Shown here piece after piece: positions 23,631 through 62,431 of a DNA stretch of 64,000 nucleotides; the first letter of the stretch is position 1, and each line of letters starts with the position of its first letter. The DNA is taken from the sequence record LT598654.1. The stretch is one strand, 5' to 3'. Both the position numbers and the translations under genes were made by a program. A model generated the notes under the pieces. The model did no database searches. It saw only the letters and a program-made list of their open reading frames with translations, and had not been told where the DNA came from.

Positions 23631-25298
23631 CTACATTCGTCGGCTAAATAGTCCGCCTGAAGGTGCAGATTTCTTCTCTTTCTTCTGTTTCTTCTGTCGA
23701 GCCATTGCTTCAAGTTCACGGATTTCAGATTCAGAGTAACCGTCATAATCGATAGAATATTTACCCGCTTCGTTTGCACTCATACCAACATTCTCTTTAT
23801 ACCACTGCATAGCGTCACCAGAGAATTGATATTTAAGTCCTTGCGAATGACGCCAAGTAGATTTGAAACAACCAATCGATTGTCCAAGTTCAGGGTCAAC
23901 AAACATTCGAATGATAGGACTTTGCTTAGGTACGTCTTCGGAAGCAGGAGTCAGTATACGACTAGATTCCTGTTCCCAGTTAGGTGCATTAGACATAGGC
24001 ATACCATAATAATGAGTGTCCCAACGAGGTACGTTCAAACCTACTTGAAGCAATGAGCGCGTACCACATACAAGTCGGATAGTACCTGCGTTTGCGTCTT
24101 CCAGAATCTTCTCACGAATCTGCTTAGCTTTACCACTGCCACCAACGAACTGTGCTGCAATAGTGCTACCCCAAGCCTTGTTAACAGTATCAACAATGTC
24201 TTTAGAATGGTAGACTGTATATACAGGAAACACAATAGAACGTCCGGCTTTCAAGTCTTTCAGGATTTGATCAACGATAAACTTATTACGCTTTTCGTGA
24301 GTTCCTAAGAAACGCATTGCACCTGTCCACGCACTAGGCCCTTTGTTTTGGAACTGTCGTTTGTTCTTAGGCTTTACGTCTGGGGTTTCATGTACATGGA
24401 TAGTAGGAATCAAGGTATCAATCTTGGCTTCGGCTACCTTAGGACCAACAAGTTCTGTCATCAAGAAGTGCTTGCCGTCTTTACGCTTGATTGTTGCAGT
24501 ACAGCCACCTTTATACTTGGTGCGAACACTACCAACAAGCTGAGAAAATTCGTTAGCATTTGCTTTTTGAATTTCATCAATCCACAAAGTACCGAAGTTT
24601 TGATTCAGCCACTTGCGTTTCTTCTTACCGTTCTTATCACTGATAAGAGACTGGTAGGTCATGATTCCAATTTGATACTGTTCAAAGTCCTCTTTCTTTT
24701 CGAGCCAGCCGTACAAACGTTTACCTGTCTTTTCTTCAAGCTTAGGTAGGTTTGTATGAAGCTTAATCTCTTTCAAGAAGTTGTTGAGGTAATCGCGTTG
24801 GTTAGCAATGATAACGAAGCGATGCCCCATTTTGATACCAATAGCGATAGAAGTTACTGTCTTACCTGTACGCGGAGGTGCTTTGATAATACCGTGTTTG
24901 TGATAAGCCCAGTCTTCTACCAGAGGTATTTGTTTAGGTCTTAGTTGACCAGTAAACTTGACTTTGTAATCAAATTTACTCTTAGTACGCAAGTCAACTA
25001 CTTTGAATTGTGAGAACTCAATACCTAGCTTTTCTTCAACGTTGAGGCGATCGCCAATAGGTAACGCGGCATAAGTAACGCCTCGATAAACATAGGTGCT
25101 CCAAGTTCTAATACAACCTTGATAACCACCTAGTTCACAGCTTGCGCATTCTTCGGTGAAGCGTATCTTTCTAAAGTCGCAACTTTTACATATCGTGTCA
25201 TCATAACGGTGATGATCATAATGCTTTTTCAGATCGTCCTCGTCGATGTACTCAAAAGGGATATACATCTTGGCACGTAAGTAGAGTTTATCGCTCAT
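23631..25298 (-). CDS. Superfamily 2 DNA helicase (UvsW-like)
   Basis: APPRTGKT Walker A, IDEIQ Walker B, TAT motif III, GLNVPRWD, QESSRI. Confidence 0.85.
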   Translation of the reverse strand: MSDKLYLRAKMYIPFEYIDEDDLKKHYDHHRYDDTICKSCDFRKIRFTEECASCELGGYQGCIRTWSTYVYRGVTYAALPIGDRLNVEEKLGIEFSQFKVVDLRTKSKFDYKVKFTGQLRPKQIPLVEDWAYHKHGIIKAPPRTGKTVTSIAIGIKMGHRFVIIANQRDYLNNFLKEIKLHTNLPKLEEKTGKRLYGWLEKKEDFEQYQIGIMTYQSLISDKNGKKKRKWLNQNFGTLWIDEIQKANANEFSQLVGSVRTKYKGGCTATIKRKDGKHFLMTELVGPKVAEAKIDTLIPTIHVHETPDVKPKNKRQFQNKGPSAWTGAMRFLGTHEKRNKFIVDQILKDLKAGRSIVFPVYTVYHSKDIVDTVNKAWGSTIAAQFVGGSGKAKQIREKILEDANAGTIRLVCGTRSLLQVGLNVPRWDTHYYGMPMSNAPNWEQESSRILTPASEDVPKQSPIIRMFVDPELGQSIGCFKSTWRHSQGLKYQFSGDAMQWYKENVGMSANEAGKYSIDYDGYSESEIRELEAMARQKKQKKEKKSAPSGGLFSRRM

Positions 25299-25305
25299 GT
25301 TATTC

Positions 25306-25644
25306 CTAACAAAGGTTTGATAATACGTGTGACCACACTTTGGATTTACGGAAAGGTAAGTACGGTGTAGTCTCTTGGAATAGTTTTACAGTACGCCACT
25401 TGGTGCCTTCATCAGTTTCGTAGTCCAAGCTTAACTCAATAGGCATACAGTCTATATCCAATACAGTTCTGCTTAGGTCTAACTCAAACCCACCTACCAT
25501 ACTGAGATAGTTTCTGTACCACTCACGCCCAGCGTTTTCGCGTAACTGTTGAAGATTGTAGTTGCCTGTTGCACATTGCAAGTCTTCTACGTCAACACCG
25601 TAAACGTGGGCTAAGGATTCGAGTAGTTTATCCACCGAGAGCAT
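25306..25644 (-). CDS. Hypothetical protein
   Basis: Co-oriented, overlaps the upstream gene. Confidence 0.6.
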   Translation of the reverse strand: MLSVDKLLESLAHVYGVDVEDLQCATGNYNLQQLRENAGREWYRNYLSMVGGFELDLSRTVLDIDCMPIELSLDYETDEGTKWRTVKLFQETTPYLPFRKSKVWSHVLSNLC

Positions 25645-25840
25645 TCGCTACGCAGTAAGACAGATATGACACAAAGACACGAGGGTCTGGTGTCTGGTTG
25701 TGCTGTTCGCATTCCAACTTATAACGCATACGAGGTTGGAAGAACTCGAAGTACTTCTTCAAAGGAGGATAAAGTTCTTCTTCCTCTACCTCAGGAGTGT
25801 TATCCAAGTCTGCTGATTGTTTTTCTGGAGGCAATGCCAT
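25628..25840 (-). CDS. Hypothetical protein (70 aa)
   Basis: AGGA RBS, co-oriented. Confidence 0.65.
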   Translation of the reverse strand: MALPPEKQSADLDNTPEVEEEELYPPLKKYFEFFQPRMRYKLECEQHNQTPDPRVFVSYLSYCVANALGG

Positions 25841-25849
25841 AGTGTTTCC

Positions 25850-26389: not shown

Positions 26390-26820
26390 TAAATTACCAT
26401 ATACTTGTTTATGTTAGGACTTTCAGGAATTAACAGGAAGCTGTCTTCCCTATCAGTATAAACAAAAACACCAGAGAACGATTCGTGATTAATAGAAACC
26501 ATTTCGGTTAAGTCACTATCAATCACAGTAACGCGGTCTTGTGCGATGCGCGTCTTCTTAGCGTTGGTGTCGAAGAAACTTCCAACGGGTCTACCCTCAG
26601 ATGATTTAATGGTATACTGAATACACTCAGTAGAGTGGACCATTGCAGTGTCAGTGACCAACTGCAAATCATCATAACCGATAGGCTTATCGTAGAACAG
26701 GACGAAATGAATTCGTCCCTTAGGACCTTTACCTAACTCGATAAAGGTATTTAGTTCTACAGGCAGTAAAGAAGATGCGATACTGAAAGGTTTTTCCAAG
26801 TCAGTAACGGGACTGGTCAT
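26389..26820 (-). CDS. Hypothetical protein
   Basis: Stop/start overlaps on both sides (TAATG type). Confidence 0.7.
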   Translation of the reverse strand: MTSPVTDLEKPFSIASSLLPVELNTFIELGKGPKGRIHFVLFYDKPIGYDDLQLVTDTAMVHSTECIQYTIKSSEGRPVGSFFDTNAKKTRIAQDRVTVIDSDLTEMVSINHESFSGVFVYTDREDSFLLIPESPNINKYMVI

Positions 26821-28142
26821 TACTGAACCAGTGCGCAGAACTGAGTCAGTTTAATATCACTATCGGCATCCGAGTGATCTGACGTTAAGATAAACACGTT
26901 AGACTTTGCAGCACCTCGAACAGCGTAGGTCTTGGCGTTGAAGCTACCTAGCTTGATGTTGGTAAGCAGGTCGTTGAAAATCTTTGGATATAACTGAATC
27001 GTTTGTTCAGCAACCGCCGCAGACTTGGTTTTCTTTTTACCTTTCTCTGCTTTCTGCTCAACATAGCTGAATGTGTTTGCAACACTTCCGTTGTCGTTAG
27101 AGAAAGAAAGGTTAACACCTTTACTTGCGAACTTGGCACGAAGTACACCACTTGCTTTTTCAGTAACCAGAACCAAGAGGTTGTTGATTGTATCAGTACA
27201 GTCACGTACATTGATCTGGTATTCACCGGAGGGTTTCTTCTTGTTCACCATATCCATCAACGCATAGAATTCATCGATAGATGATTGTTCAGTTTCTTGA
27301 ACAGGTGGAAGTGAAACAACGACGTTCTTACTTAGTACGCGGAAACCTGCTTCGCTGATAAAGAAAGATGCCGATTGCTCTGCTTCGTCACCTAATACCT
27401 TGTTGATTACGTTAAACACTTCATTGGTCAACGACATACGGAAAGGCTTTTCTTTGCCTGCTTCGAATTGACATTCAAACAAGCTCGATGCCCAACGTGT
27501 TTTGGTAATAGCTTTCAACACACCGTCTTGGTAGTCGATGTAGATTTGGCTAGCCTGTCTGTCATCCAGGTGATCGATAAGACGGGTACGCTGTACACCT
27601 TCGCGTAAACGGCTAAGGAGTTCGCTTCCGATTCCGTTAGAACGTTTAAGCCCTTTGCCGAAAATATCATTAACAGCTGGAATCTGATCGACAGTAACAG
27701 GAGTTGTTTTAATAACCCCGTTGAATCTGCCATCTTTCATAGAAAGTTCAGTACCGTCGTACTTGAATTGAATGTTACCGCGACCCTTGATAATGCCTTT
27801 AAGAACTTCGGGTTCAAAGTTAAACGCACCTGAGTCGGCTACTTCAATACCAGTATCGATAGCGATATTTGTATCAGAGGAGTAACCAATGATGAACAGG
27901 TTACCGCTATAACTAACAAGCATGTGTCTACGCATTACGCTGCTGTTAGAAACAAAGCCAGTTACTGCAATAAGTTTGTCCACCGCTTCAACCATTATCT
28001 TGGCATCCATGTTGAACTCAAACTTATTCTTCGATTTCTCCGACAACTGAATCTGAAAAGAAACTGCGCTATCTGATTTGGTAGTCTTCTTAGCGCGTGT
28101 CTTGCTCTTGGTAGGAGTTTTTGTTTTAGCTGCTTTCGCCAT
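26820..28142 (-). CDS. DNA polymerase III beta-like sliding clamp with a basic N-terminal extension
   Basis: About 400-aa three-domain beta/alpha pattern (NLFIIGYSSD, IQFKYDGTELSM, VNLSFSNDNG). Next to the polymerase. Confidence 0.6.
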   Translation of the reverse strand: MAKAAKTKTPTKSKTRAKKTTKSDSAVSFQIQLSEKSKNKFEFNMDAKIMVEAVDKLIAVTGFVSNSSVMRRHMLVSYSGNLFIIGYSSDTNIAIDTGIEVADSGAFNFEPEVLKGIIKGRGNIQFKYDGTELSMKDGRFNGVIKTTPVTVDQIPAVNDIFGKGLKRSNGIGSELLSRLREGVQRTRLIDHLDDRQASQIYIDYQDGVLKAITKTRWASSLFECQFEAGKEKPFRMSLTNEVFNVINKVLGDEAEQSASFFISEAGFRVLSKNVVVSLPPVQETEQSSIDEFYALMDMVNKKKPSGEYQINVRDCTDTINNLLVLVTEKASGVLRAKFASKGVNLSFSNDNGSVANTFSYVEQKAEKGKKKTKSAAVAEQTIQLYPKIFNDLLTNIKLGSFNAKTYAVRGAAKSNVFILTSDHSDADSDIKLTQFCALVQ

Positions 28143-28476
28143 CGTCTTTCCGTTCTGTTTGATTTGTTGAATTATTTTTACAGTTTACTACCTTGAACCC
28201 AACAAACTTCGATTGTAAGAATTCTATAGCTAACTGATAGCTCTGAGTCTTTAAAGGTAAGCATCCACCTAGTACACCGACTACGCTAACACCTACCATA
28301 TTGTCCTGCAAAGGAATACACAGTGCAGGAGATTCAATAAGAGTCTCCGAACACACGTATATTGGGCTGACCAAACTACTCATAGTGTCGTAGTCAGCTT
28401 GCACCATTTCATTTAAACGATTAGCAACTGAGGTAAGCAGTTCTAAATCGTGACGTTCACTTAGTTCAGTAATCAT
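28126..28476 (-). CDS. Hypothetical protein
   Basis: Overlapping neighbours, co-oriented. Confidence 0.65.
   Translation of the reverse strand: MITELSERHDLELLTSVANRLNEMVQADYDTMSSLVSPIYVCSETLIESPALCIPLQDNMVGVSVVGVLGGCLPLKTQSYQLAIEFLQSKFVGFKVVNCKNNSTNQTERKDDGESS
28175..28186 (-). promoter_or_regulatory. Candidate promoter box AAACTGTAAAAA
   Basis: 32 nt upstream of the clamp ATG. Confidence 0.35.
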
Positions 28477-29348
28477 GTTCCTAACTCGTTACCGAAAGCG
28501 TATACGTGACAGCGCATACTTAAACTATAAGCGTGTTGCATACACCACTCGGCTACCTGAGGTAAGATAGCTGTTTGCTGTTCTTGAGTAGCACCCATAG
28601 GCATCAAATAAATGTGCTCGTTGTCTGGGTCTAACCATTCGTCAGAACCGCCTACGTCAAGTAGTTCCTGCATTTTAGCAAGGTATAAACCAACTTCGGT
28701 TACATCAGTTTGTGTACCAACGACAAACTTAAATGAACGCTCCATAGAATGGACTTTCATCTGACTAGACAGTGCTTTGAATGACCAAGCTTTACCGCGA
28801 GGTTCACCACTAGCTTTCATTTTAGGACTGTTAGAGAAGTGGATGCGAGTACTACCCATTTCGCTATTTAAAAACTCTACTAGTTCGCGTTTTATAGGTA
28901 AGCTGGCATTTGTCTCAATAGTGATAGTACGCTCGTAAGCGTAACCGCGCTCATGTATAACTTTGAAGATTTCCAACAATGCTTTTTGGTTCATCATTGG
29001 CTCACCGCCAGTAAACACGAAGTCTACTAAGTCAGGTCTAACACCGATAGGTAACAAGCTAACACACTTGTCTACGATTTCAGTCGCAGTCATTTGTTTA
29101 GCAAGATGTTTGTAATCTTTATGCCAACTGTACCGGCTATCACAACCTTTGGTGAAGTCATCATTAGACAATTCTTCAATCGAATCTACGTGTCGGATAG
29201 GAATATCGCCAATGTTACCATCACTGTCAATATTATCAAAACCCTTACATTCGAAGTTACAACCGAACAATCGGATAAAGAAAGAAGGACGACCAGTGTA
29301 TAGTCCTTCTCCTTGGAGTGAATAGAATATCTCTACTACGTTTATCAT
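28473..29348 (-). CDS. queE: 7-carboxy-7-deazaguanine synthase (radical SAM)
   Basis: EIFYSLQGEG, FIRLFGCNFEC...GCDS, FTGGEP, TIETNA, SNSPK, LSMRCH. Confidence 0.92.
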   Translation of the reverse strand: MINVVEIFYSLQGEGLYTGRPSFFIRLFGCNFECKGFDNIDSDGNIGDIPIRHVDSIEELSNDDFTKGCDSRYSWHKDYKHLAKQMTATEIVDKCVSLLPIGVRPDLVDFVFTGGEPMMNQKALLEIFKVIHERGYAYERTITIETNASLPIKRELVEFLNSEMGSTRIHFSNSPKMKASGEPRGKAWSFKALSSQMKVHSMERSFKFVVGTQTDVTEVGLYLAKMQELLDVGGSDEWLDPDNEHIYLMPMGATQEQQTAILPQVAEWCMQHAYSLSMRCHVYAFGNELGT

Positions 29349-32300
29349 TACGCAACCTCTTCTTTGTATTTACGTAGTGCCTTTTTCTTAGCCCTTGCAC
29401 TAGCGATTGCTTTCTTGATACTGGTACGTCGAGTGTTACCGATTTCAGATCCACCTTGCGCTTGCTTCTCTGCTTTCTCACGACGAGCCAACTCTTTTTC
29501 GTTCGCTGGTATTTCTTTGAGGTATTTCTTGATTGCTTTTTTCTCTTTAGGTGTACGAATATCTTCACCCATAGACTCAATCTTAATACCGTTAGACCAC
29601 AGTTGCTTCTTCATCCAATCAGGCATCGTAGCATACTGAGTTTCCATGATTGTGTGGTACGCTTTGTCTATGTCAATGTCATAGCTGAGTTCGTTGACCT
29701 GTGTTTCCAGCGTGGTACGAATGAGTTTCTTCATACCTTCATAGGAGAAGTCCCATCCTTCAACGTGTTTCTCAGTAGCGCCTATTTCAAAGTCAATCTC
29801 AGGTAGACTGGTAAAATCAAAGTCGATACGATTCTGAACCTGCTTAACCACTTCACTAGTCAAACCTCGCTCAATCATATCAAGTGCTAACCAAACGTCT
29901 TCATAACCACACTCAACAGTTACCGAGTCATGCACCGATACCGACAAGTGCATATCAGGATAGTGACCTGTTTTCTCGTAGTGTTCATACATCATGCGAT
30001 TGATATTACGAATACCGATCATCATTAAGTCTGAACCGAAACCCTGAACAGGTGAGTTTACTGATCTACGTTCTTGGCTTGATACAACAAAGCCTGCGTG
30101 AGGATAATCTTTAGGCAGCATCAATGCCCATAGATGCCTACGACGACCCAACGGCGATTCAACAAACAAGTTCTTACGTGCAAACTTCTTAATCTTATCA
30201 AACCATTTCAAACCAACAGGGAAACGAGTTAAGAACTTTTCCTTTAGTTCCACAATCTTTTCAACTGTTTGACCGGAACCCGCTGCAAGACCTTTATCAC
30301 CTTGTTGATAGATAAGACCGAAGATTACAGTCTTAACCGAGTTACGAACTTCCTTAATCTTATCACGCGCTGTAATAGGAATACCGAAGAAGTAACTGGC
30401 ATTCAAACGGTGAACGTCACCTTCGTCTTCAATACGACGAGCGACTAACTTGTCAGGAACAAAACGGAAACGATTACGTAAGTCTGCACCTGTCTGGAAC
30501 AAGTCAGCTACGCCTTTATCTCCTGATATAATAGACCAACCTCTAACTTCGTGTGCCGAGTAATCCACTTTGATTAGTAGTTTACCTTTACGCGAACTGA
30601 ATAGACGTTTAATCTGTTTACCTAAAACACTGCGGCTTGGAATCTGCTGCAAGTTAGGATCAGAGGCAGACGTTCGACCCGTAACAACTTTTTGATAAGA
30701 GTAACGTGGTCGTATGCGTTGGTCATATTTAAAGTCGTCGTTAGATGCCCATAGCTTCAACAGGTTTTTAACGTATGCGTTTCTAAGCTTACACGCTTTT
30801 TGCCAGTCACCAAATAACTGAACCATCTTAACGTCTTTGTATTGCTTCTGGAAGTCTTTATCGATCTTACCAAGAAATTTACCGTTAGAACGTTTCTTCT
30901 TCGTACTGACACCGACCGGCTCCAGTTCCATAACATCAAAGAACAGCATTTGTTTATGTTCTTCGGAGTTAAGAGAAAAGTTATCTTTGATTTCAACTTT
31001 ACCGAACAAGCCTTCGCTAGGTAAGTTGCGGCCTTCACTGATTAACTCATTTACCTTACGCACTTCTTTAGACGTATATATCTGAGCCTCAATCTTGGCA
31101 ATCTCTTGGTTAATAGGACTGTCAGGATGCTCTAGCTTAAACAGGTACTCTACATCAGTGTACGCACCCGTCGATTCCAGACAACTGAAGGTGTGTATTT
31201 GGTCACTGATCTGTTTACCTATCAGTGCTTCATACTTCTTGAACTTTATGTCCTTAGCCCTGCGCAATTGCGAAAAGAAAATGTGCCAGGGAACCACAAC
31301 GTCAAGACTACAATAATCTAGCACAGGTTCGTCAAGGTGTACCTTACTGATAGTTGCTCGGTCTTCTTTACCAAACTCATTGGTGTAGAAGCTACGACAA
31401 CCATACTGCATAGCCAAGTTAGCAAGATTGTAATAACCAAAACTAGTGATGTTATGTATCACTTTCATGTTTTCGTCAAGACCGAATTCACCAGCCTGTA
31501 TATCCCAAACGTCAGCTTTGTAATATCGGATACCGAAGTTACTACGCATTACGTTAAGGTCGAACTGTGCGTTTGCGTATATCTGGTAAACGTTTTTGTT
31601 ATCCTGTTCAAAGTATTTCTTGAACAGCTTCTTAACCAACTTCAACTCCTTAGCAGTAAACGGAGTATCCATATGGTAGATTGGGATAATGTAAGCGGTC
31701 TTACCGTCAGCACATAACTGAACTGTTTGCAGTCGGTTACACACACGATACAGGTTTTCTGTTTCTGTATCCACTGCAACATACTTGCTTTTAGCCATAA
31801 GCTTCAAGCATTTCTTTAGTTTGTCAATCGTGTCTACATAAACTACATCGTAGTTCTTTTTGGTTTCATCAGATACAAAAGGAATCTTATATCTAAGAGT
31901 ACCACCGTCCAAAGTAGAAACGAAATTACGAGCGGTGTATCCTAACAAGTTTGCAGTGTTAGTAAGGTCGCCGTTCTTGTTACTGATCATCCCATTAAAG
32001 CTGAGTGAACTTATGTGGATGAATTTGTGCTTCTTCTTACCTTGCTCAACCTTCGCATTAATAGGTACACCTAACCAATGCTGGTCAAAGCCTTTGTGCT
32101 GCACAATCAAGTCACGGCTTATAGCGTACTGAGGATCTTTACCGAATGTATGAACAATATCAGGCTTGTACTCGATAATAGCCTGGCGCATACGACGAGC
32201 GAATTCCAAACGAGCTTCGTTTTGGTAATCCTCACTCATGCCGTAGGTTTTAAAACAATTAAAGTTCATAACCAAGTAGTCGTATTCCTCAATTGAATAC

Positions 32301-32542
32301 TCAGCTTGGTAGAATTCGTAGGCTAGGTCAGCTACTTTATGAAACACGTTATCAGTATAACCCGATAGTATTTCACCTGTACCTAAATCTTCGGAGGGAA
32401 CGTGGTCTAATACAAACAGTATCTTACCGACAGGTTTCTTTGGTTTATTTCTCAACAGTTTGAGATCGCCTTTGAACTCCACTACTCGGTCGTAATACCG
32501 GTCTTTGAAGTCAAAGTCAAAGTCTATATAGGACTGGCTCAT
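29348..32542 (-). CDS. polA: Family A DNA polymerase with an N-terminal UDG-like domain and 3'-5' exonuclease
   Basis: ExoI DTETE, ExoII NAQFD, ExoIII YCSLD. TGRTSASDPNLQQIP. Motif A DYSAHEVR, motif B RNSVKTVIFGLIY, motif C VHDS. Confidence 0.92.
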   Translation of the reverse strand: MSQSYIDFDFDFKDRYYDRVVEFKGDLKLLRNKPKKPVGKILFVLDHVPSEDLGTGEILSGYTDNVFHKVADLAYEFYQAEYSIEEYDYLVMNFNCFKTYGMSEDYQNEARLEFARRMRQAIIEYKPDIVHTFGKDPQYAISRDLIVQHKGFDQHWLGVPINAKVEQGKKKHKFIHISSLSFNGMISNKNGDLTNTANLLGYTARNFVSTLDGGTLRYKIPFVSDETKKNYDVVYVDTIDKLKKCLKLMAKSKYVAVDTETENLYRVCNRLQTVQLCADGKTAYIIPIYHMDTPFTAKELKLVKKLFKKYFEQDNKNVYQIYANAQFDLNVMRSNFGIRYYKADVWDIQAGEFGLDENMKVIHNITSFGYYNLANLAMQYGCRSFYTNEFGKEDRATISKVHLDEPVLDYCSLDVVVPWHIFFSQLRRAKDIKFKKYEALIGKQISDQIHTFSCLESTGAYTDVEYLFKLEHPDSPINQEIAKIEAQIYTSKEVRKVNELISEGRNLPSEGLFGKVEIKDNFSLNSEEHKQMLFFDVMELEPVGVSTKKKRSNGKFLGKIDKDFQKQYKDVKMVQLFGDWQKACKLRNAYVKNLLKLWASNDDFKYDQRIRPRYSYQKVVTGRTSASDPNLQQIPSRSVLGKQIKRLFSSRKGKLLIKVDYSAHEVRGWSIISGDKGVADLFQTGADLRNRFRFVPDKLVARRIEDEGDVHRLNASYFFGIPITARDKIKEVRNSVKTVIFGLIYQQGDKGLAAGSGQTVEKIVELKEKFLTRFPVGLKWFDKIKKFARKNLFVESPLGRRRHLWALMLPKDYPHAGFVVSSQERRSVNSPVQGFGSDLMMIGIRNINRMMYEHYEKTGHYPDMHLSVSVHDSVTVECGYEDVWLALDMIERGLTSEVVKQVQNRIDFDFTSLPEIDFEIGATEKHVEGWDFSYEGMKKLIRTTLETQVNELSYDIDIDKAYHTIMETQYATMPDWMKKQLWSNGIKIESMGEDIRTPKEKKAIKKYLKEIPANEKELARREKAEKQAQGGSEIGNTRRTSIKKAIASARAKKKALRKYKEEVA

Positions 32543-32664: not shown

Positions 32665-33171
32665 CTACCGTTTCTTTTTCTTCTTACGGAATTGCTGATT
32701 GAATTGCGTAGAAGGGGTAGCTGACTGTTCTTGCTGAGCCTCACCAGAAGATTCCGCAGTAGCATCCTCAGGTTCTGAATTAGATTCCTCTATTTCGTTT
32801 TCAGACTCAGCATCAGTCTTTGGGTTTTCAGTAGTCTCCGCATCGGGAGCATGTACTGTGTCACGGCGATTGTCGTACACCTCATGCAAGTCACCTGACC
32901 ATTCAGTAATGCGCTCCTGTGTGAGTTCATCACAAGCAAGGTAACCTTTACGTCGAGGGTCAAGATAAATACCTGAAGGGTACTTACTAACGTGACCTAA
33001 TTCAAAAGGCATACCGTTGTTAGGATACGCTGGCTTGAATTTAGGATCAGCTTCAAACGCCTTCTTAGCTTTGATAGTAAGAGCAGACCAGATACCATCA
33101 CATTTACCTGTGTAGTAGCCGAGTGCTTTTAGTATCATTTGTTGGTTCTGAATTAATCGTCTATTAACCAT
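32665..33171 (-). CDS. Peptidoglycan-binding-domain protein with an acidic tail and RKKKKKR end
   Basis: QQMILKALGYYTGKCDGIWSALTIKAKKAF matches the PG_binding_1 pattern. Confidence 0.7.
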   Translation of the reverse strand: MVNRRLIQNQQMILKALGYYTGKCDGIWSALTIKAKKAFEADPKFKPAYPNNGMPFELGHVSKYPSGIYLDPRRKGYLACDELTQERITEWSGDLHEVYDNRRDTVHAPDAETTENPKTDAESENEIEESNSEPEDATAESSGEAQQEQSATPSTQFNQQFRKKKKKR

Positions 33172-48562: not shown

Positions 48563-48584
48563 ACCGGATTCTCCTTATGTATGC

Positions 48585-48596
48585 TATTTACAGTAT
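48585..48596 (-). promoter_or_regulatory. Candidate promoter box ATACTGTAAATA
   Basis: Intergenic, 22 nt upstream of the ATG at 48562, after a terminator-like hairpin at about 48609-48628. Confidence 0.5.
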
Positions 48597-48631
48597 TTGA
48601 AGAAATGAAGGGAACGTCCTTGTTCCTTATT

Positions 48632-49790: not shown

Positions 49791-50762
49791 TTAACTTACC
49801 TTCTTTTTCTTGAGTCTACGACGCTTAGGTTTGGTGGTCTCTTTCTCTTTGGTTTTCTTAGCAGGTTTAGCTGCCGGTTTCTTTTTAGCTAAGGCTTTCT
49901 GTTCTTCGGCAGCTTTCTTCGCTGCACGTTTCTCTTTAGCCTGTCGCTGAAAATCTTTTATGGTAACACCTTGTTGATCACTGTACAGGCTTTCATTGTC
50001 GATAACCTTAACAATGTAGTTCAGGTCGTAAGCCTGCATACCAACTTTATTACCGATAGCTTCGTAGCTGAACGCTTTACCTGATTCTTTGGCTTCGCGT
50101 ATCATAGCACAAGCATCCTGCGCTTTCTTACCTACGTCACTAAGCAAGAGTTCGCGGAATTTATCCTGCTTATATTTGGTTAGGTCTAAGTCACCGCGCA
50201 ACTTTAAGAACATACGCTCCAAAGTATCGGCATCATGACCTTGATAAATCCAATTACAGATAGCGAAGGTAACAGGCTTCTGCATGGTTGAAGACTTCAA
50301 GGTATAAATGATAGTCATCAAAGGCATCAGGATTGTACCAACCGATTTAGTACGGTCGAGAACTTTGGACATATAGTTTTCTTTGTCACGAGAAACAGCA
50401 CCCGGTTCTGCAACAAATTGTTCGGTACGCCATTCAGTCATCAAGTATTTGATACCAGGCATTTCAGGATTGTTTTTAAAGTCCAGCCAAATACTATTGG
50501 TAAACTCTGCACATCGGAAGCAAGGAGCAAACACGTAAAAGCTGTGATGCTTAAATGCTGAGTGCGATAGCAATTCAAAGTTACGACGTAGATCACGGTA
50601 GGAGATAAAAACAATGTTGCGGGATTTCTTTGCAACTGATGTTTTTAATTTTGCTCCGAACGAAACCAAATGAAACTCAGAAGGGTGCATATCATAGGTA
50701 TCATGTGCCCAACTGAGGAATTGTTCTGGCGAATGGTTCGCAATACATAACAAGCGAGACAT
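49791..50762 (-). CDS. Hypothetical protein with a polybasic C-terminal tail (possible degenerate clamp-loader subunit)
   Basis: Alpha/beta N-terminus then helical. The function is speculative. Confidence 0.6.
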   Translation of the reverse strand: MSRLLCIANHSPEQFLSWAHDTYDMHPSEFHLVSFGAKLKTSVAKKSRNIVFISYRDLRRNFELLSHSAFKHHSFYVFAPCFRCAEFTNSIWLDFKNNPEMPGIKYLMTEWRTEQFVAEPGAVSRDKENYMSKVLDRTKSVGTILMPLMTIIYTLKSSTMQKPVTFAICNWIYQGHDADTLERMFLKLRGDLDLTKYKQDKFRELLLSDVGKKAQDACAMIREAKESGKAFSYEAIGNKVGMQAYDLNYIVKVIDNESLYSDQQGVTIKDFQRQAKEKRAAKKAAEEQKALAKKKPAAKPAKKTKEKETTKPKRRRLKKKKVS

Positions 50763-51721: not shown

Positions 51722-54164
51722 GGGTCTTACCTGAGTTGATAGAACTTACCCCATTCCGCTTTTCAATTGTCCACAATTCACACTCACTGAAAATATCAGT
51801 AGACTTAGGTGTAATCCAAAATATGTGAGGAACAAGTGAACGGAGTTTAGGAATAAATTCTTTTGCTAAGTGTTCACGTACAGCATCACTACAAGCACTA
51901 TCAGGTTCATCCAGTATCATAAAGTTGGTTCTGCGATTAGCAGGAACAAGCGGTAGAATACTGATAGCGAAAAGTAATCTAAAGCAATTAGTTTCCGCAC
52001 CTGAGAGTTTTGATATGTCACTTGAAAGTCCGTTCTTCCTGGTGACCACGGCATCAATTCCCTGAGTACCTGCATCTAACTTAAATACCATTGTCTCAGG
52101 AAATACCATATGACTAAAGTTGTTTAGGTTAGCTTCTATTATTTTTAGTATTTTGGTTGCTTGTCGTAGTTTAAGGTTTGTATTGCCGAATGCACCGTAG
52201 AGAGTTTCGACAATCTTTTTCTCCTCAATTATAGGACGCGACTTAGATAGCTTTGCATCTAATTCGTGCTTCTGTTCAGTGAGCAGAGACCAATTACTCT
52301 TTGCACTTTCCAACGCAACAAGTTTTGAACTCTGTTCTTTTGAGGATGCGTTTAACTCCGAAATACTATCTTCGTATTCGGAGATTGAAGAATCCATATC
52401 AGCCAAATGTGTTTTGAGTTTAGCGCCTGCTTTTTTGTATTCAAGCTTAACGCAAAGGCTTTTAATGGATTTCAATTCGTCTTTACCAATAGAGGTAATA
52501 GACTTGAATAACTGACTAAGACGATCAAACTGTTTGAAGTAATCATATATATCTTCGATAAGCTTATCTACGGTTTCTGAATTCAAGTCAGGATAGTTAA
52601 GCTTACCTTTTGGAGACACGGGTACTGTGATGGAGTCAAGCTTAATGTCGATTTCATCGAGACTAGATACAATCTCCTCCAATTCAGAAAGCTTTTTACT
52701 TTCCTTCTTGAGGTTCTCGCGCATGACATTCAAGGCTTCCAATTCTTTTTCAAGCTTGGTAGTATCCGTAATAGACTCTTGCAATTCATTGTAAGCATGT
52801 ACCAGTTTCTGCGCCTGTTTTAATTGCTTCAACTTAGGTAAACGCTTTTCAGCTTTCTTAGCCTGAGTTTTGAGTTTTGCCTGGTTAATCTTCTGATTAC
52901 ACGTAGGACATTCTGAATGGTCTTCAAGCTCTTGGTAAAGTTCAATAACAGTACTGAGCATAGACATTTCATCAGACACATCAGTATCCAGATCAACATC
53001 AGTAACCTTTTTAAACCCGAAGCTTTTTAGTTTATCTAAAATACCATCTGCTTCGTCTATAGTTTCAATCTGCTCCTCAAGCTTTGCGCTGAGTTTGGAA
53101 TAATCTGATTTAACTTTGGAAAAGGCTTCGTCTATTTCACGTAATGCCTTGCGGATTAATTTAACACCTAATGACTTCTGTTTCTTTGGAAGTTTAAGTG
53201 CCTTAACTTCGGCTAGCAGGTCTTTCTTGGTAGCATTTAACTTAGCGACTTTCTTCTTGTGGTCGGCAACTGCTTGCTCATAGTCCTCAAGCTTAGTACC
53301 TAAGATCAAGTCGGCTTCCAATTCTTTTTCCAGCACATGAATATCGGAGTTATACTTGGTCAAAGGCTTAGATGCTTTAGCCAAAAACTTTAGGGCTTTA
53401 ACCAATTTATCTAGTGCTTTGAAGTCACTCTTGGCATCATTAAGTTCTTGGTAAAGCTGTTCCAGTTTACTGCTTGCTGCTTCTGCTTTAGCACGTAGAG
53501 ATTTTAATTCTTTGTTTTTCTTTGCAGACCAACCTGTTTTACCTAAGCTACGCTCAACACTATCCAACTGAGCAGAAAGAGAACCGAATTCAATTTCTTT
53601 TTCTTTAATTGCTTGCTTGCGCTTGCTAAAGTAGGCTCGAATCTGATCATAAAAATGCAGGTCAAACAGATTAGTAATAAAGTTCAAGCGTTCACTCGGT
53701 TTCGCTTTTTGGAAATCACAAGGTCGTTGAGATTGAATGTACGCAGTGGTATAGAATTCTTCTTGTCGAAGTGTCCAGTGGTCTCCGAAGATACCTCTTG
53801 CTATATCACCTTTTTGTGCTTTCTGGTCTTCACCATCCAAGAACACTTTATATTTAGCGCCGATTTGGTCTAGCTGAACATGCTTACCTTCATTAGATAA
53901 GAAGTCTATTGCAATACTAGAACCTTTTGTTCCGTGTAAATCTTTTTTGTTTTTCTTTGTTAGCGATAGAGGGTCAGCTTCATACGCAGCAGTAGGCAAT
54001 GCAGACCAAAACAAACTTTTACCAGCACCGTTTGAGTTGTTCGCAATGTTACTGTCATGGTTGATACCATTTACTACTACGAAGCCGTTGTTTTCCTCTA
54101 CAGCTACAGTGGCGTCCTTAAAGCTAACAACGTTCTTTAAGGTAATGCCTTTAAGGCGTATCAT
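51705..54164 (-). CDS. sbcC: SbcC/Rad50-family SMC ATPase
   Basis: NGAGKS Walker A, coiled coils, CPTC hook, LSGAE signature, LDEPD. Confidence 0.92.
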   Translation of the reverse strand: MIRLKGITLKNVVSFKDATVAVEENNGFVVVNGINHDSNIANNSNGAGKSLFWSALPTAAYEADPLSLTKKNKKDLHGTKGSSIAIDFLSNEGKHVQLDQIGAKYKVFLDGEDQKAQKGDIARGIFGDHWTLRQEEFYTTAYIQSQRPCDFQKAKPSERLNFITNLFDLHFYDQIRAYFSKRKQAIKEKEIEFGSLSAQLDSVERSLGKTGWSAKKNKELKSLRAKAEAASSKLEQLYQELNDAKSDFKALDKLVKALKFLAKASKPLTKYNSDIHVLEKELEADLILGTKLEDYEQAVADHKKKVAKLNATKKDLLAEVKALKLPKKQKSLGVKLIRKALREIDEAFSKVKSDYSKLSAKLEEQIETIDEADGILDKLKSFGFKKVTDVDLDTDVSDEMSMLSTVIELYQELEDHSECPTCNQKINQAKLKTQAKKAEKRLPKLKQLKQAQKLVHAYNELQESITDTTKLEKELEALNVMRENLKKESKKLSELEEIVSSLDEIDIKLDSITVPVSPKGKLNYPDLNSETVDKLIEDIYDYFKQFDRLSQLFKSITSIGKDELKSIKSLCVKLEYKKAGAKLKTHLADMDSSISEYEDSISELNASSKEQSSKLVALESAKSNWSLLTEQKHELDAKLSKSRPIIEEKKIVETLYGAFGNTNLKLRQATKILKIIEANLNNFSHMVFPETMVFKLDAGTQGIDAVVTRKNGLSSDISKLSGAETNCFRLLFAISILPLVPANRRTNFMILDEPDSACSDAVREHLAKEFIPKLRSLVPHIFWITPKSTDIFSECELWTIEKRNGVSSINSGKTHEKAQ

Positions 54165-54640
54165 TGTCCTAGCAGTATTCCTAAATGTGATCTAAAGGCG
54201 TTTGTGGTGGCATTAAAATGAGCGTAGGCATTTGTTACCAGCTTGTGTGCTCGATGCTCTAATCGGTATACAAACTCGCGCAACTCACTTGCATCGTACC
54301 CGTCATACTCTGACTGGGTGCATTGGTATTCAGAAGTACGACAATAGATAGGTACGCCGTTTACTGTATCCTGGATAGTAGGTAAATCGAACTCCGCAAA
54401 AACTGATCCATTGTCCGCGTATACACAGCAGTTAAGAAATACTTTAGAGCGCAGGGAAAACAAACTAGGATTCGTGAGTACACTATCCTGTTTCAAGTTA
54501 CGCAGATTAGGAGAGCCTGCGATTTTTTTAATATGTTCTTCCAACTCACCCGCATCATTTGTCAATCGTTCAAACTGAATGCCAACATCGGAATGTATTG
54601 AATACCGGTAGTCAAAAGCGTAGACGTAGAATTGCCTCAT
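54161..54640 (-). CDS. Hypothetical protein
   Basis: ATGA overlaps with both neighbours. Confidence 0.7.
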   Translation of the reverse strand: MRQFYVYAFDYRYSIHSDVGIQFERLTNDAGELEEHIKKIAGSPNLRNLKQDSVLTNPSLFSLRSKVFLNCCVYADNGSVFAEFDLPTIQDTVNGVPIYCRTSEYQCTQSEYDGYDASELREFVYRLEHRAHKLVTNAYAHFNATTNAFRSHLGILLGQ

Positions 54641-57067: not shown

Positions 57068-57073
57068 AATGAC

Positions 57074-58366
57074 CTACTTTTTCTTTTTGGGTTTAGACAT
57101 ATCCAACAAACCGCTGAATACATCGTCGATTACCAACTCACTGAGTTGAAGCATAGAGTAACGTTCACTTCGGATTGCAGGTACAGTCAGTATTGTGTGC
57201 TCGATCTGTTGAAGACAGTGCGCAATCTTCATTACCAACGCAAGGCTAACATTAATCTTAACCTTTTCTTTTGCTTCCAACTTCTTCTTGGCTTCAAAGT
57301 AATACTTACCGTTGTAAGGTACGTACTTGACTGCACCTGCGCTGTACTTGATCAACCAATCAGTAAGGTTTAATGCGCGTCGAACCAACTGGGTAGCATC
57401 TTTACTTTGGTCAATGATACCAACAATGCTTTCCAAATCTTGGTTAAGAGTATACAAGAACAAACTAACTGCTAACTTGTCTAACTCAGCACCCGCGGTT
57501 TTGTCCTGCAACGAGATAACTGAATCGTCATCGAAGTCGGCATCACCACTGTTAATAGCACTAAGCAAACCATCCAATAGAGTGAGAGCTTGACGTACCT
57601 GACCTTCGGAAAAATCAGCGATAGTGTACAAAGCACCTTCAACGTTCTTCTTGTTCTTTTTGTTTACTTCAATACCTTCTTGATCAAGAACATGGTAAAG
57701 ACGTTCAACGATTAACTCGCTAGGTACTTTACGTAGATTAAGAACTTGGCATCGGTTCTGAACAGTAGACTTGATCTTGGCAAGGTCTGTAGTACACAGA
57801 ATCCACATAGTACCAGGAGTTGGTTCTTCTAGTGGAATAAGCAAAGCTTCCAGCGCCTTACCTGACAACAAGTGGACTTCATCGATGATATAGATACGGC
57901 GGCGATAAGTTGGAGCAAACATGGTAGTGCTGATCAACTTACGGATTTCTTCAACAGTAGAGAACTCTCCACTGTTACGGTACACAACATCAGGTAAATC
58001 TTTCTTGTACTGGCAGAAGCTACACTTACCACAGCTAGACATAGTTTCGCAGTTGACGTAACGCGCTATCATACGAGCAAGTGTTGTTTTACCGCTACCA
58101 GTCTCACCTTCGATAAGAATAGATTGAGGGAACTGTTTCTTTTTAATCCAGCCTTTAAGCTTCTTAACTGCCGCCTCTTGACCAACAAACCCGTCCAGGT
58201 TGTGAGGTCTGTAGACAGCACCTAGATTTCGAGTAACCAGATCACCGTTTTCGTCTTCAACCATATCCGGTTTTGCAGAAACCTTAGATTTCTTAGCTTT
58301 GCGCTTGACTTCGGTTTTGCCAGATTTAGTGCGCTTGGTCTTGCGCTTTTCTTTACTAGTTGCCAT
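57074..58366 (-). CDS. dnaX: Clamp-loader ATPase, DNA polymerase III gamma/tau-like
   Basis: YRPHNL, GETGSGKTT, CGKCSFC, IIDEVH, LEEP, TVQNRC, GQVRQA. Confidence 0.9.
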   Translation of the reverse strand: MATSKEKRKTKRTKSGKTEVKRKAKKSKVSAKPDMVEDENGDLVTRNLGAVYRPHNLDGFVGQEAAVKKLKGWIKKKQFPQSILIEGETGSGKTTLARMIARYVNCETMSSCGKCSFCQYKKDLPDVVYRNSGEFSTVEEIRKLISTTMFAPTYRRRIYIIDEVHLLSGKALEALLIPLEEPTPGTMWILCTTDLAKIKSTVQNRCQVLNLRKVPSELIVERLYHVLDQEGIEVNKKNKKNVEGALYTIADFSEGQVRQALTLLDGLLSAINSGDADFDDDSVISLQDKTAGAELDKLAVSLFLYTLNQDLESIVGIIDQSKDATQLVRRALNLTDWLIKYSAGAVKYVPYNGKYYFEAKKKLEAKEKVKINVSLALVMKIAHCLQQIEHTILTVPAIRSERYSMLQLSELVIDDVFSGLLDMSKPKKKK

Positions 58367-59294: not shown

Positions 59295-59304
59295 TCACAG
59301 CCAC

Positions 59305-59330
59305 AAAAAAAGGAGCATAAAGCTCCCTTT
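59305..59330 (-). terminator. Rho-independent terminator
   Basis: GGAGC-TTTAT-GCTCC followed by T7. Confidence 0.8.
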
Positions 59331-59331
59331 C

Positions 59332-59964
59332 TTATTTTGACTTTAAGTTCTTGTGGAAGTTAAATCTTCCGAACAGTCTAAGACCTTTGTACATTAACCA
59401 ACTGCGCCACGCGGGTACTCTACGCATCAGCAAACTTAGATAGAAGATTTCGTCGGCATGACGTTGACTAACCTTCTTGATAGTCGATGACAGGTAGTTG
59501 TCTTCTTCACGTTCAGCACAGGCACACAGGTGCATTTCAACATCGTGCCGGTAAAACAAATCGTGCAACACACTAGGTTTAGCTGCGCGTCCTATGGGGC
59601 TAACTAACCACCACAAAAACTGTGGTGACGAAACAAAGTCCGTAGTAAAGCCTGCTCGTATAGTTATGTGAACATAGAAACACTTTGCATTTAGGGGCAC
59701 TTCACTTAAAGGAGGACGATTAAGAAAACATTGCATGTAACCGTTAGGAAGTTGGTACATCCAAAAATAAAAGTCCATGCCGTCTAGTAACGTAAAGTCT
59801 TTCCCGTTATCCAACATTTCTACACGAGGGTTCGCATTAAAGTTGGCGACATAGGGTTTAAAATCTAATTGCTTGGTTACATCAACAGTTCGCAAGACAT
59901 AAGTGTCATTGAGAATAACCTGTTCATGAGGACTAAGCCGTTTTTCTACTTCTGTTTTTAACAT
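59332..59964 (-). CDS. DUF1353-family protein
   Basis: AGFTTDFVSSP, PSVLHDLFY, ADEIF, WRSWLMYKGLRLFG. Confidence 0.8.
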   Translation of the reverse strand: MLKTEVEKRLSPHEQVILNDTYVLRTVDVTKQLDFKPYVANFNANPRVEMLDNGKDFTLLDGMDFYFWMYQLPNGYMQCFLNRPPLSEVPLNAKCFYVHITIRAGFTTDFVSSPQFLWWLVSPIGRAAKPSVLHDLFYRHDVEMHLCACAEREEDNYLSSTIKKVSQRHADEIFYLSLLMRRVPAWRSWLMYKGLRLFGRFNFHKNLKSK

Positions 59965-60869: not shown

Positions 60870-60901
60870 AAAATACTCCTGTTTATTATTCTTATGCGTA
60901 C

Positions 60902-60942
60902 CTGCTTAAATTACTAAGCAGAGGAACTGATGCCCCTCTGCT
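60902..60942 (-). terminator. Two overlapping, mutually exclusive hairpins
   Basis: AGCAGAGG/CCTCTGCT (8 bp) and CTGCTTA/TAAGCAG (7 bp) share AGCAG at 60917-60921. Confidence 0.5.
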
Positions 60943-60948
60943 ATCTGG

Positions 60949-61332
60949 TTAGGATGTAGCTAATTGGATACCAGTGGTTGTTTCAAGGTATCCTTTTTCC
61001 AACTGACTCGGACACTCGTATACCAAACAATTGATACCAGGCTCCAGACGAATAGGTAACAGACCTTCGGGGTCAAGAGTAACAAACGGTTTATCAATGC
61101 TCAATTGCATCGTTACACCAGTTTGAGTGCGCTGCGGAATAGCATGTACTTCACGGCATTTTCTTAACACAACACCTGCATAGGCTGGTGCCATACTATC
61201 CTGATTTTTTGACACGCTTGGAATAAGGTGCTCTACCTTACCAATCAGTTCTGCGCCAGTAAACAGCTTGATAATAATCACACTGTCTTGATACTGACCT
61301 AATTGGCTTAATTGAATTTGAGTTAATTCCAT
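60949..61332 (-). CDS. Hypothetical protein, possible Sm-like fold
   Basis: IIIKLFTGAELIGKV N-terminal pattern. Confidence 0.6.
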   Translation of the reverse strand: MELTQIQLSQLGQYQDSVIIIKLFTGAELIGKVEHLIPSVSKNQDSMAPAYAGVVLRKCREVHAIPQRTQTGVTMQLSIDKPFVTLDPEGLLPIRLEPGINCLVYECPSQLEKGYLETTTGIQLATS

Positions 61333-61342
61333 TTTGTTTCCC

Positions 61343-62431
61343 TTAGTAATGGACTGTTAGATTTTTCAAAGTGAACTTACACGCTTTCTCTACGTCTTTA
61401 GGCAGAGAATGACCACTCAAGAAATAGCTAAGGGACTCGGCGAAAAACTCCTTAACGTTCTTGGTAGCGTACTCGGTAATATCAGCTTTAAACGTACTGT
61501 TGTCGGTAACAGTGGGCCACAACTCTTTGAACTTTTCCGGCTTGGTTAACGCCAACGCTTCCAGTTCTTCTTTGTCAATGTGGTGAATCTTTTTGACGTA
61601 GCTGATCACTTCCTTGAACGCATCGTGTTCATCAGGATTCTCACTGCGCAATTCTTTTAGAATTTGAGGGAACCGTGAACCTTGCTTAACGAATTCGATG
61701 ATCACATCCGCTAAGGTATCAAGATCATCCTGTTCGATACGCTGTACCTGTGCGCGTTTGTTAAATAGTGCAGACCAACGAGCCTTAATATCACGAGGAA
61801 CTTGTCGGTACCAGATACCATGTGAAGATTCATGCAGGATAAGCTCAACCAGGTATTTTGAATCGGTTAAATCTACAGGCATGAAGTTGAGTACATCCTG
61901 CGGACCTGCATTGGTGGTCTTCATCACATAACAACCTTCCATCTTGGAAGTGTTAGACTTGAGGTTGATATGCGTCAGGCAACCCATCCAGTTATCACTG
62001 GCTTTGTCTTCCAGAATCTTGTGAGCCTTCTTCATAGCTTTAACAAAGATATTGGCTTCACGGTCAGTAAGTGCATTACGATAAACGTGAATAGGCTTGG
62101 GCCAACCTGCCTTAAGGTCACGCTGATATATTTCAATGTTAACACCGAAAGCTTTACCAGTCACCTGCGGTTGAGGACCTAAGTTACAAACGATTTGGTC
62201 AGGAGTAAACTCAACAACTTTAGGTTCATCGCTGGTAGCAGATTCTTCCAACAAAAGCTTGCCTTTGCTAAATGCAAGACCTAGAACCTTTTTGCTTTCC
62301 AGTTTGATAATCAGGTAATCATCTTTACCATAAGTAAAATCAGACTTCGCTGACTTGGCTTTTGCTGATTTAGATTTAGTTTTCTTTTTGGTTGTCTTGG
62401 TTGACGATCTAAGTTTTTTGCGTAGTGCCAT
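61343..62431 (-). CDS. Putative zinc metallopeptidase (HExxH; anthrax-lethal-factor-like C-terminal motif)
   Basis: LILHESSHG and EYATKNVKEFFAES. Confidence 0.65.
   Translation of the reverse strand: MALRKKLRSSTKTTKKKTKSKSAKAKSAKSDFTYGKDDYLIIKLESKKVLGLAFSKGKLLLEESATSDEPKVVEFTPDQIVCNLGPQPQVTGKAFGVNIEIYQRDLKAGWPKPIHVYRNALTDREANIFVKAMKKAHKILEDKASDNWMGCLTHINLKSNTSKMEGCYVMKTTNAGPQDVLNFMPVDLTDSKYLVELILHESSHGIWYRQVPRDIKARWSALFNKRAQVQRIEQDDLDTLADVIIEFVKQGSRFPQILKELRSENPDEHDAFKEVISYVKKIHHIDKEELEALALTKPEKFKELWPTVTDNSTFKADITEYATKNVKEFFAESLSYFLSGHSLPKDVEKACKFTLKNLTVHY

Follow-up and report, generated by a model that had tools for sequence, protein, structure and literature searches.

The 64,000-nucleotide stretch of sequence record LT598654.1 analysed here (the window) raises the question of why so many of the DNA-handling proteins that it encodes should carry runs of lysine and arginine at their ends. 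The window matches, at 100% identity, the final part of the record of NCTB, a jumbo myophage with a circular, metagenome-assembled genome of 257,877 bp whose source is given as 'surface water'; subtracting 193,877 from a record position gives the window position, which is used below except where the record is named. NCTB has been named a Trichodesmium phage in one paper, but those of its relatives that have been cultured belong to the 'Lupandier' jumbo myophages (PaBG, Lu11, Dickeya JA29 and AD1, and Erwinia Y3), with proteobacterial hosts throughout (PMC7412058). These relatives are distributed among the genera Baikalvirus, Salmondvirus and Sasquatchvirus, which are placed directly under Caudoviricetes. 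Every long open reading frame (ORF) of the window lies on the minus strand, as do all window features described below. Structural genes occupy positions 1-17.8 kb, and a replication, recombination and DNA-modification module, syntenic with the relatives, lies beyond 17.8 kb. An initial annotation, made from the letters of the window, had ascribed polybasic, disordered tails to nearly every DNA-handling protein in it, and all the basic strings quoted there were found in minus-strand ORFs at the places given.

Basic tails on the DNA-handling proteins

The whole NCTB genome was assembled and all ORFs of at least 80 residues were scored, a tail being counted when a terminal 20-residue window had a net charge of at least +7. 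Tails were found in 12 of the 24 DNA-handling proteins recognised by the record annotation plus PHROG and Pfam matches, and in 19 of the 276 other ORFs (odds ratio 13.5, Fisher p=2e-7). This proteome-wide count, which the initial annotation had proposed, bears out the enrichment, but at about half of the DNA-handling proteins rather than nearly every one; in the window, SbcC, SbcD, a DHH protein, a small polymerase-like protein and the termini of a giant SNF2-like helicase are without tails. The tailed proteins are the single-stranded DNA-binding protein (SSB; C-terminus, +13), GyrA (N, +11), the clamp loader DnaX (N, +11), the large terminase TerL (N, +10), the sliding clamp (N, +9), PolA (C, +9), UvsX (N, +7), DnaB (C, +7), the PolI 5'-3' exonuclease (C, +7), a UvsW-like helicase (C, +7), a histone H1-like protein and an HNH protein. 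DNA contacts are also represented among the 19 tailed ORFs of the other group, namely by the portal (C, +10) and an MmcB-like nuclease (C, +9). On the other hand, a set of 16 proteins without a DNA substrate, which covers nucleotide metabolism, queuosine synthesis, lysis, the sheath and the tape measure among other functions, includes only 2 with a tail, and neither of these belongs to any of the five categories named. These comparisons took as their baselines the homologues from bacteria and those NCTB proteins that do not act on DNA; the intended outgroup, Vibrio phage GR7B, is itself tailed, which leaves no tail-free phage baseline.

The distribution of the tails along the genome follows the same division. 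In the window, 23% of the ORFs in the replication module are tailed against 0% in the structural part, and the corresponding figures for the early/replication 100 kb and the structural/metabolic 100 kb are 14% and 2%. A within-protein shuffle test singles out seven proteins of the whole genome at p<0.002, where about 0.6 would be expected, and 24 of the 55 best basic windows are located in the outermost tenth of the protein at one end or the other (binomial p=6e-5). Hydrophobic residues make up 4-13% of the tails against ca. 33% of whole proteins. K/R clusters akin to monopartite nuclear localisation signal (NLS) patterns occur within the tails, but a true NLS (the initial annotation had suggested an NLS-like code) makes no sense since the cultured relatives infect ordinary proteobacteria. 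No regular short repeats of the PAKKA/AKKA type were found in the enzyme tails, repeats being confined to H1-like proteins and to a duplicated KPRRRKLKR in ORF 40804-41568.

The sliding clamp illustrates both the tail and an internal variant of it. The ORF at 26820-28142 has no Pfam or PHROG match, but profile and model comparisons identify its predicted product as a DnaN-type beta sliding clamp of three-domain fold: a profile of five orthologues matches solved beta clamps in the PDB (E=4e-5), and an AlphaFold2 model built with 88 homologues (predicted local distance difference test, pLDDT, 90; predicted template modelling score, pTM, 0.85) has beta clamps as all of its best 50 Foldseek matches (E ca. 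1e-20, TM up to 0.8). The N-terminal tail (28065-28142) comprises 26 residues, of which nine are K/R and 4% hydrophobic, and residues 1 to about 28 of the model have a pLDDT of 51-67 and no secondary structure. An internal basic loop of residues 361-379 (27006-27062), which contains KGKKKTKS, is modelled in the same way (pLDDT 68, no secondary structure). All four clamps of the NCTB sub-clade have the N-terminal tail, with differing sequences, whereas an N-terminal charge of at least +6 is present in only 2 of 118 other clamp homologues. The loop is an insertion with respect to JA29, Y3, PaBG and Lu11 in the alignment, and a basic insertion occupies the identical site in two relatives, P0002 and P0003.

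ORF 57074-58366 encodes a DnaX-type clamp-loader ATPase with an AAA+ module (Pfam DNA_pol3_delta2, 1.1e-27; phrog_5846, 4e-73; Walker A motif located; AlphaFold2 pLDDT 89.9). Its N-terminal tail (58268-58366) has 15 K/R in 33 residues, and the gene ends in KPKKKK (57077-57094; pLDDT ca. 52). Residues 1 to about 35 are modelled with a pLDDT of 46-48 and no secondary structure, and the last eight residues are likewise of low confidence and unstructured. An N-terminus of at least +6 was found in 8 of 16 sequences of the phage clade and in none of 104 bacterial ones, and the Walker A motif lies at a median position of 66 in the phage clade as compared with 44 in bacteria. The C-terminal tails of the relatives P0006, P0007, P0009 and Y3 are either short and K-rich or long and rich in S, R and K.

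PolA (29348-32542) is a somewhat different case. The Pfam DNA_pol_A match stops near residue 902 and Bst Pol I ends about seven residues past NCTB residue 911, so that the NCTB protein runs about 146 residues beyond the end of solved bacterial family-A polymerases; within this extension a conserved domain precedes an end that is variable and rich in K and E. The C-terminus is basic (+6 to +10) in all relatives except one (+2). The basic tip itself (29351-29431; 27 residues, 11 K/R) is 19% hydrophobic and its sequence is kept in the closest relative, and it is therefore probably helical and of another kind than the disordered tails. The disorder claimed in the initial annotation holds in the models of the clamp and DnaX but probably not for PolA. 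Its statement that bacterial DnaN, DnaX and PolA lack such extensions agrees with the figures given above for DnaX and PolA, and among other clamp homologues such tails are rare. Judged by these comparisons, the extensions are genuine add-ons that bacterial homologues do not have. The UvsW-like helicase (23631-25298; ResIII, phrog_16) carries nine K/R in a C-terminal tail of 23 residues (23634-23702), which is also present in Lu11 and in both NCTB-clade relatives examined but is absent from JA29 and Y3. The identities of PolA, DnaX, the UvsW-like helicase and the HNH protein are backed by both Pfam and PHROGs.

Orthologues were collected from four cultured relatives, from five uncultured contigs of the NCTB clade and from GR7B; the relatives were drawn from the protein database, a scan of IMG/VR with DnaX patterns having rendered none. 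Several of the tails are found throughout the lineage, namely those at the N-terminus of DnaX and the C-termini of DnaB and the MmcB-like protein, the basic N-terminal region of ORF 40804, the basic C-terminus of PolA, the C-terminal tail of SSB (PaBG +8, Y3 +11, GR7B +10) and the N-terminal tail of UvsX (+6 to +8). Others are restricted to the NCTB clade, such as the N-terminal tail and internal loop of the clamp, the C-terminal tail of ORF 49791 and, with the addition of Lu11, that of the helicase. There are also tails in relatives that NCTB does not have, on SbcC of PaBG, on the small polymerase-like protein of Lu11 and on orthologues of ORF 48239. Tail sequences cannot be aligned even between enzymes whose cores are 40-79% identical: among orthologues of 22-79% identity it is position and composition that are kept, and not sequence, with repeated gain and loss. 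As far as the collected sequences go, the trait spans the marine clade of NCTB, the phages PaBG and Lu11, those of Dickeya and Erwinia, and Vibrio phage GR7B. Two of the outcomes that the initial annotation had set against its own proposal were not observed, the tails being kept in relatives and not equally enriched among non-DNA proteins.

Two trivial origins of the tails were considered and ruled out. An artefact of start-codon choice is contradicted by the fact that the N-terminal tails begin at the first ATG, with a weak Shine-Dalgarno-like motif at 8 of 12 starts checked, that such a motif precedes an alternative start after the tail in RecA only, and that orthologues keep the tails in frame. 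Poly(A) slippage was ruled out since the lysine codons of the tails show no excess of AAA (AAA 39, AAG 47). Some GenBank models appear to err on the short side. The 216-residue model of ORF 49791-50762 is, on alignment, too short at its 5' end, since relatives align from residue 1 of the 323-residue ORF. The annotated start of PolA lies 20 codons downstream of the first ATG, while relatives align from residue 1, and the annotated start of TerL (record 67987-70260) leaves out a basic N-terminal region of 79 residues; these two models also seem to be too short at the 5' end.

The H1-like protein, other charged proteins and neighbouring genes

A protein of 215 residues encoded at 46283-46930 is 35% K/R (K 22%, A 17%, R 13%, P 10%), with repeats at both ends and a helical-looking core in the centre. 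The initial annotation had called it a free histone-like protein, of which the composition stands but not a family relationship: no match was found in Pfam (the linker-histone winged helix included), PHROG or NCBIfam, and membership of a curated family such as linker histone H1 or AlgP was rejected on these grounds. A K/A/P-rich protein of 190-430 residues adjoins SbcD in JA29, Y3, PaBG, Lu11, TARA65 and TARA734, the one in Lu11 having PGRPKK repeats. Homology between the proteins of the NCTB and PaBG clades could not be demonstrated (hhalign probability 2%), the link consisting of gene position, size and composition.

The virion proteome of PaBG includes gene product 191, 'unknown', of 35,272.92 Da, Coomassie-visible and present in several bands including band 8, and gene product 202, 'RuvB helicase-like', of 221,161.95 Da, in the largest band (PMC7412058, Table 1). 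The masses calculated for the PaBG counterpart of the H1-like protein (35,272.47 Da; pI 11.3) and for the giant SNF2-like helicase of PaBG (221,159.27 Da) match these two products, and both are therefore abundant virion proteins in PaBG. Replisome enzymes are not represented among the other 12 virion proteins identified in PaBG. The H1-like protein of NCTB is probably virion-borne as well, by its position and composition, and the finding in PaBG suggests in the first place that the protein acts together with DNA that is packaged or injected. The SNF2-like helicase of NCTB (33198-39026; 1942 residues) is probably packaged in the particle too, since its PaBG orthologue is the 221-kDa virion band. 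The basic tract noted inside this protein in the initial annotation does exist (34029-34088), as a mixed-charge tract, but it was rejected as part of the pattern because it is not conserved as basic, the aligned segment having a net charge of -4 to +5 in six relatives.

Among the remaining tail-bearing proteins of the module, the HNH endonuclease (40397-40801; 134 residues, 21% K/R, Pfam HNH 1.8e-13) is basic along its whole length, and its basic ends are conserved in sequence in all relatives. ORF 40804-41568 (phrog_23026, with a weak KorB-like match) has 24 K/R in residues 11-62 (41383-41538), including KPRRRKLKR twice, and a basic N-terminal region is also found in JA29, Y3, PaBG, TARA65 and TARA734 with differing sequences. 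The C-terminal tail of ORF 49791-50762 (49794-49904; 37 residues, 18 K/R; phrog_18876) recurs in TARA65 (+9), JGI5 (+8) and TARA734 (+4) and is absent from JA29, Y3, PaBG and Lu11.

The tails that the initial annotation listed on a metallopeptidase and a peptidoglycan (PG)-binding protein are present, but they are patchy in the first case and probably unrelated in the second. The putative Zn-metallopeptidase (61343-62431; phrog_17197 'peptidase', 3e-63) begins with 30 residues of which 13 are K/R (62342-62431); such a tail is found in PaBG and Lu11 and not in JA29, Y3, or TARA65 and JGI5, the two closest relatives from which the gene was recovered. Its HExxH motif (residue 200) occupies one alignment column in four of seven orthologues, those of NCTB, two relatives of its clade and PaBG, and since the motif is missing in JA29, Y3 and Lu11, some members of the family may lack peptidase activity. 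A role as DNA-dependent protease was rejected (best structural peptidase match E=0.17, no Pfam match), and the SprT-like protein of PaBG is a different gene from the orthologue of the metallopeptidase. The PG-binding-like protein (32665-33171) ends in FRKKKKKR (32668-32691); its orthologues are annotated as putative lysozymes and have short basic ends. The protein identities given in the initial annotation agree with our results for the clamp, DnaX and the HExxH of the peptidase, whereas the PG_binding_1 match is weak (Pfam E=0.06). The tail of this protein probably lies outside the DNA theme, its short cationic end being probably there for envelope-related reasons.

Strongly acidic termini were found in 19 ORFs of the genome, with 20-residue windows at the C-terminus down to -18. 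They include small proteins of the early and replication regions (for example, record 9071-9514, 47669-49582, 53368-54252 and 74744-75199); several have an aromatic-plus-acidic tip at the very end, and an FHA-domain protein is among them. In the window, ORF 49140-49790 has a polyacidic C-terminus (20-residue window, -11), also present in TARA65 and JGI5, and adjoins the basic-tailed ORF 49791. Acidic and basic blocks alternate in the tails of SSB, DnaB and some DnaX, and UvsX combines a basic N-terminal tail with an acidic C-terminal tip in four phages (NCTB, PaBG, Y3 and GR7B). The gp32-like SSB (phrog_15004; record 13991-15289) has an acidic block followed by its polybasic end (+13), while in PaBG an acidic tip follows the basic block and in Y3 and GR7B the end is poly-Lys.

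Several further observations concern neighbouring genes. Five tandem paralogues of 342-402 residues (5367-6407, 6433-7641, 7642-8688, 8701-9735 and 10152-11180), with alike N- and C-termini, low K/R and no tails, look like a structural array of the virion module. A protein of DUF1353 type (59332-59964; 'tail assembly chaperone' in PHROG) has a C-terminus of +9 that is kept in relatives and is basic yet hydrophobic, and so differs in character from the low-complexity tails. Genes of 7-deazaguanine metabolism lie both within the window (17896-18687, 20657-21373 and 28473-29348), where they encode a QueC-like protein, GTP cyclohydrolase I and QueE, and outside it (record 9565-11160 and 158914-159978), where they encode QueD and a tRNA-guanine transglycosylase (TGT)/DpdA-like protein (Pfam TGT, 1.5e-8). 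The DNA of NCTB is probably hypermodified. The TGT-domain protein of GR7B has a C-terminal tail of +10, a tail that NCTB lacks. ARAGORN detected no tRNA gene in the NCTB window; in PaBG, two tRNA-Lys(ttt) genes (locus 296-844) adjoin the replication module, which is notable beside Lys-rich tails.

What the tails may do

The initial annotation had read the tails as a shared targeting or condensation code, with a replication compartment and exclusion of host factors. Nothing in the sequence shows any of these, and non-specific binding to DNA would be a simpler reading. We favour the possibility, which we rate at about an even chance, that the basic tails are sequence-independent electrostatic tethers to DNA. 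In NCTB and a wide range of its relatives, the proteins that work on DNA (the clamp, the clamp loader, PolA and the UvsW-like helicase in the window, and SSB, UvsX, DnaB, GyrA, the large terminase, the portal and repair nucleases outside it) have acquired extra ends, 6 to about 50 residues long, which are predicted to be disordered and are rich in Lys/Arg and Ser/Thr/Ala/Pro. These would bind the DNA backbone in the manner of histone H1 tails and the lysine-repeat tails of actinobacteria, so that phage enzymes would be locally more concentrated on phage DNA and would stay on it for longer. Neighbouring acidic blocks, as in SSB, DnaB and some DnaX, would probably tune or mask this binding, and the K/A/P-rich H1-like protein most likely coats the genome and travels in the virion. 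This reading is the best supported because the enrichment tracks contact with DNA, enzymes without a DNA substrate are spared, and the composition is that of known tails that bind DNA non-specifically. Contact with DNA also fits better than membership of the replisome, since the portal, the terminase, gyrase and nucleases are tailed as well.

Several points weigh against tethering. Some DNA enzymes have no tails (SbcCD, the ligase termini, Dam and the UV endonuclease), and some proteins of no obvious DNA role do have them (the putative metallopeptidase, the PG-binding-like protein, a coiled-coil 'MscL' and an Ap4A hydrolase). A non-specific tether would also bind host DNA and RNA, a polybasic SSB tail is the reverse of the canonical acidic tip, and the 19 polyacidic-tailed ORFs point to a protein-protein component beyond simple tethering to DNA. 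This last point is the core of an explanation that we consider unlikely, although it deserves to be taken seriously, in which the basic tails dock the polyacidic tails and tips of SSB, UvsX, DnaB and small acidic-tailed proteins and so knit the replisome together. There is a precedent in phage T7, in which the acidic C-termini of gp2.5 and gp4 bind basic patches on the polymerase (gp5/thioredoxin). The charge blocks of SSB, DnaB and some DnaX, the opposite ends of UvsX and the aromatic-plus-acidic tips of several acidic ORFs, one of the 19 lying directly beside ORF 49791, would all be expected from such docking; the tails on proteins from outside the replisome (the portal, terminase, gyrase and nucleases) would not, and no conserved motif specific for a partner is present. 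Docking is in any case compatible with tethering to DNA and not exclusive of it.

A second alternative, to which we give still less credit, keeps the idea of a compartment: the H1-like protein and phage DNA would form a shell-less, charge-driven body into which the tails admit phage enzymes and from which host factors are excluded. It would account for the constant genomic position of the H1-like gene throughout the lineage and for the blocky charge patterning, which is typical of coacervating proteins; the abundance of the PaBG counterpart in the virion would allow the genome to be coated from entry, and the tails on the few proteins without an obvious DNA role could be cargo tags. The enzymes of nucleotide metabolism, however, are tail-free, the gain and loss of tails protein by protein is odd for an obligatory address label, and a 2026 review of jumbo-phage biology reports nothing comparable and mentions neither histones nor condensates. 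In its most specific form, which we hold to be more doubtful again, the jumbo phages of this supergroup would have no protein-shelled nucleus; a virion-borne H1-like polycation would coat the delivered genome, replication would proceed in a shell-less body, and the basic and acidic tails would be a composition-based partition code that admits phage DNA enzymes and disfavours host nucleases. If true, the need that the phage nucleus serves would have been answered a second time and independently. Functionless drift, in which Lys-rich ends arise readily at gene boundaries and are tolerated, would explain why tails vary in sequence and length between close relatives and appear and vanish (in the peptidase, the clamp and the orthologues of ORF 48239). 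We find it improbable in view of the 13-fold excess of tails among the DNA-handling proteins of a single genome with a single mutational background, the maintenance of a basic charge at the same terminus down to ca. 30% identity in DnaX, SSB and UvsX, the lack of an AAA codon bias and the tail-free structural proteins. It is very improbable that the tails mark proteins to be packed with the DNA for the next cell: the presence of the H1-like protein and the giant helicase in the PaBG virion would agree with this, but that helicase has no terminal tail, no replisome enzyme was among the other identified virion proteins, and known head-targeting in phages acts through the prohead scaffold and not through DNA binding. 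Least credible of all, in our opinion, is targeting to anionic membranes, by which polybasic ends would anchor a replication factory to the inner membrane. Polybasic stretches do bind acidic phospholipids in many systems, but the NCTB tails are almost devoid of hydrophobic or amphipathic anchor residues and their enrichment tracks DNA substrates.

Comparison with known systems

No description of polybasic tails on phage replication proteins, or of a virion H1-like protein in this lineage, was found in the literature search. Tails of this sort are known as such, but their use on so wide a front among the DNA-handling proteins of a virus appears not to have been described before, so that the word 'undescribed' of the initial annotation seems right within the literature searched. 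A scan of about 60 NCTB proteins, part of the proteome, gave no match to the shell protein of nucleus-forming phages. The analysis brings out a conserved and probably virion-borne H1-like protein that had gone unannotated, and the pattern as a whole provides a hypothesis for the organisation, and perhaps the shielding, of DNA in jumbo phages without a known protein-shelled nucleus. The lineage also constitutes a natural comparative data set on the evolution of disordered charge tracts under selection. In practical terms, the tails account for spurious 'ribosomal protein-like' and 'low-complexity' annotations, and several gene models could be corrected.

Tethering tails have been known one protein at a time, whereas here they extend across replisome, recombination, topology and packaging proteins of one lineage, with some unexpected bearers such as the beta clamp, and SSB, whose canonical tail is acidic. 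The lysine repeats of Streptomyces TopA stabilise the enzyme-DNA complex and confer processivity (PMC5714199), and the PAKKA repeats of Mycobacterium smegmatis Ku modulate DNA binding (PMC3553676). Like these, the NCTB tails are lineage-specific, K/R-rich, low-complexity terminal extensions of DNA enzymes that are missing from homologues elsewhere; unlike these, which are cellular, occur protein by protein and consist of regular repeats, they are found on about half of the DNA-handling proteins, at either terminus, mostly without a regular repeat and often paired with acidic blocks. In phage phi29, the terminal protein has a basic N-terminal domain whose non-specific binding to DNA brings the replication machinery to the nucleoid (PMC4974454). 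There, too, a phage protein uses basic residues for sequence-independent binding and has NLS-like signals, comparable to the K/R clusters of NCTB, but the phi29 domain is largely helical and belongs to a single protein that recruits the polymerase, whereas the NCTB enzymes each have their own tail of predicted disorder and no protein-primed replication is involved. The H1-like protein shares K/A/P-rich repeats and an extreme basic charge with the C-terminal domain of histone H1 and with Pseudomonas AlgP (PMC9239181), from which it differs in being phage-encoded, in having no detected homology and in having a PaBG counterpart that is a component of the virion. The T7 replisome also relies on charged flexible termini; in T7 acidic tails meet structured basic patches, whereas in NCTB both polarities are flexible and extend beyond the replisome. 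Finally, the nucleus-forming jumbo phages, from whose family the cultured relatives of NCTB are classified apart, likewise keep their DNA enzymes from host factors, by means of a protein shell and dedicated import; this import, to go by the title of a paper cited in PMC13282480, is licensed through multiple protein interfaces and not by a simple linear basic signal.

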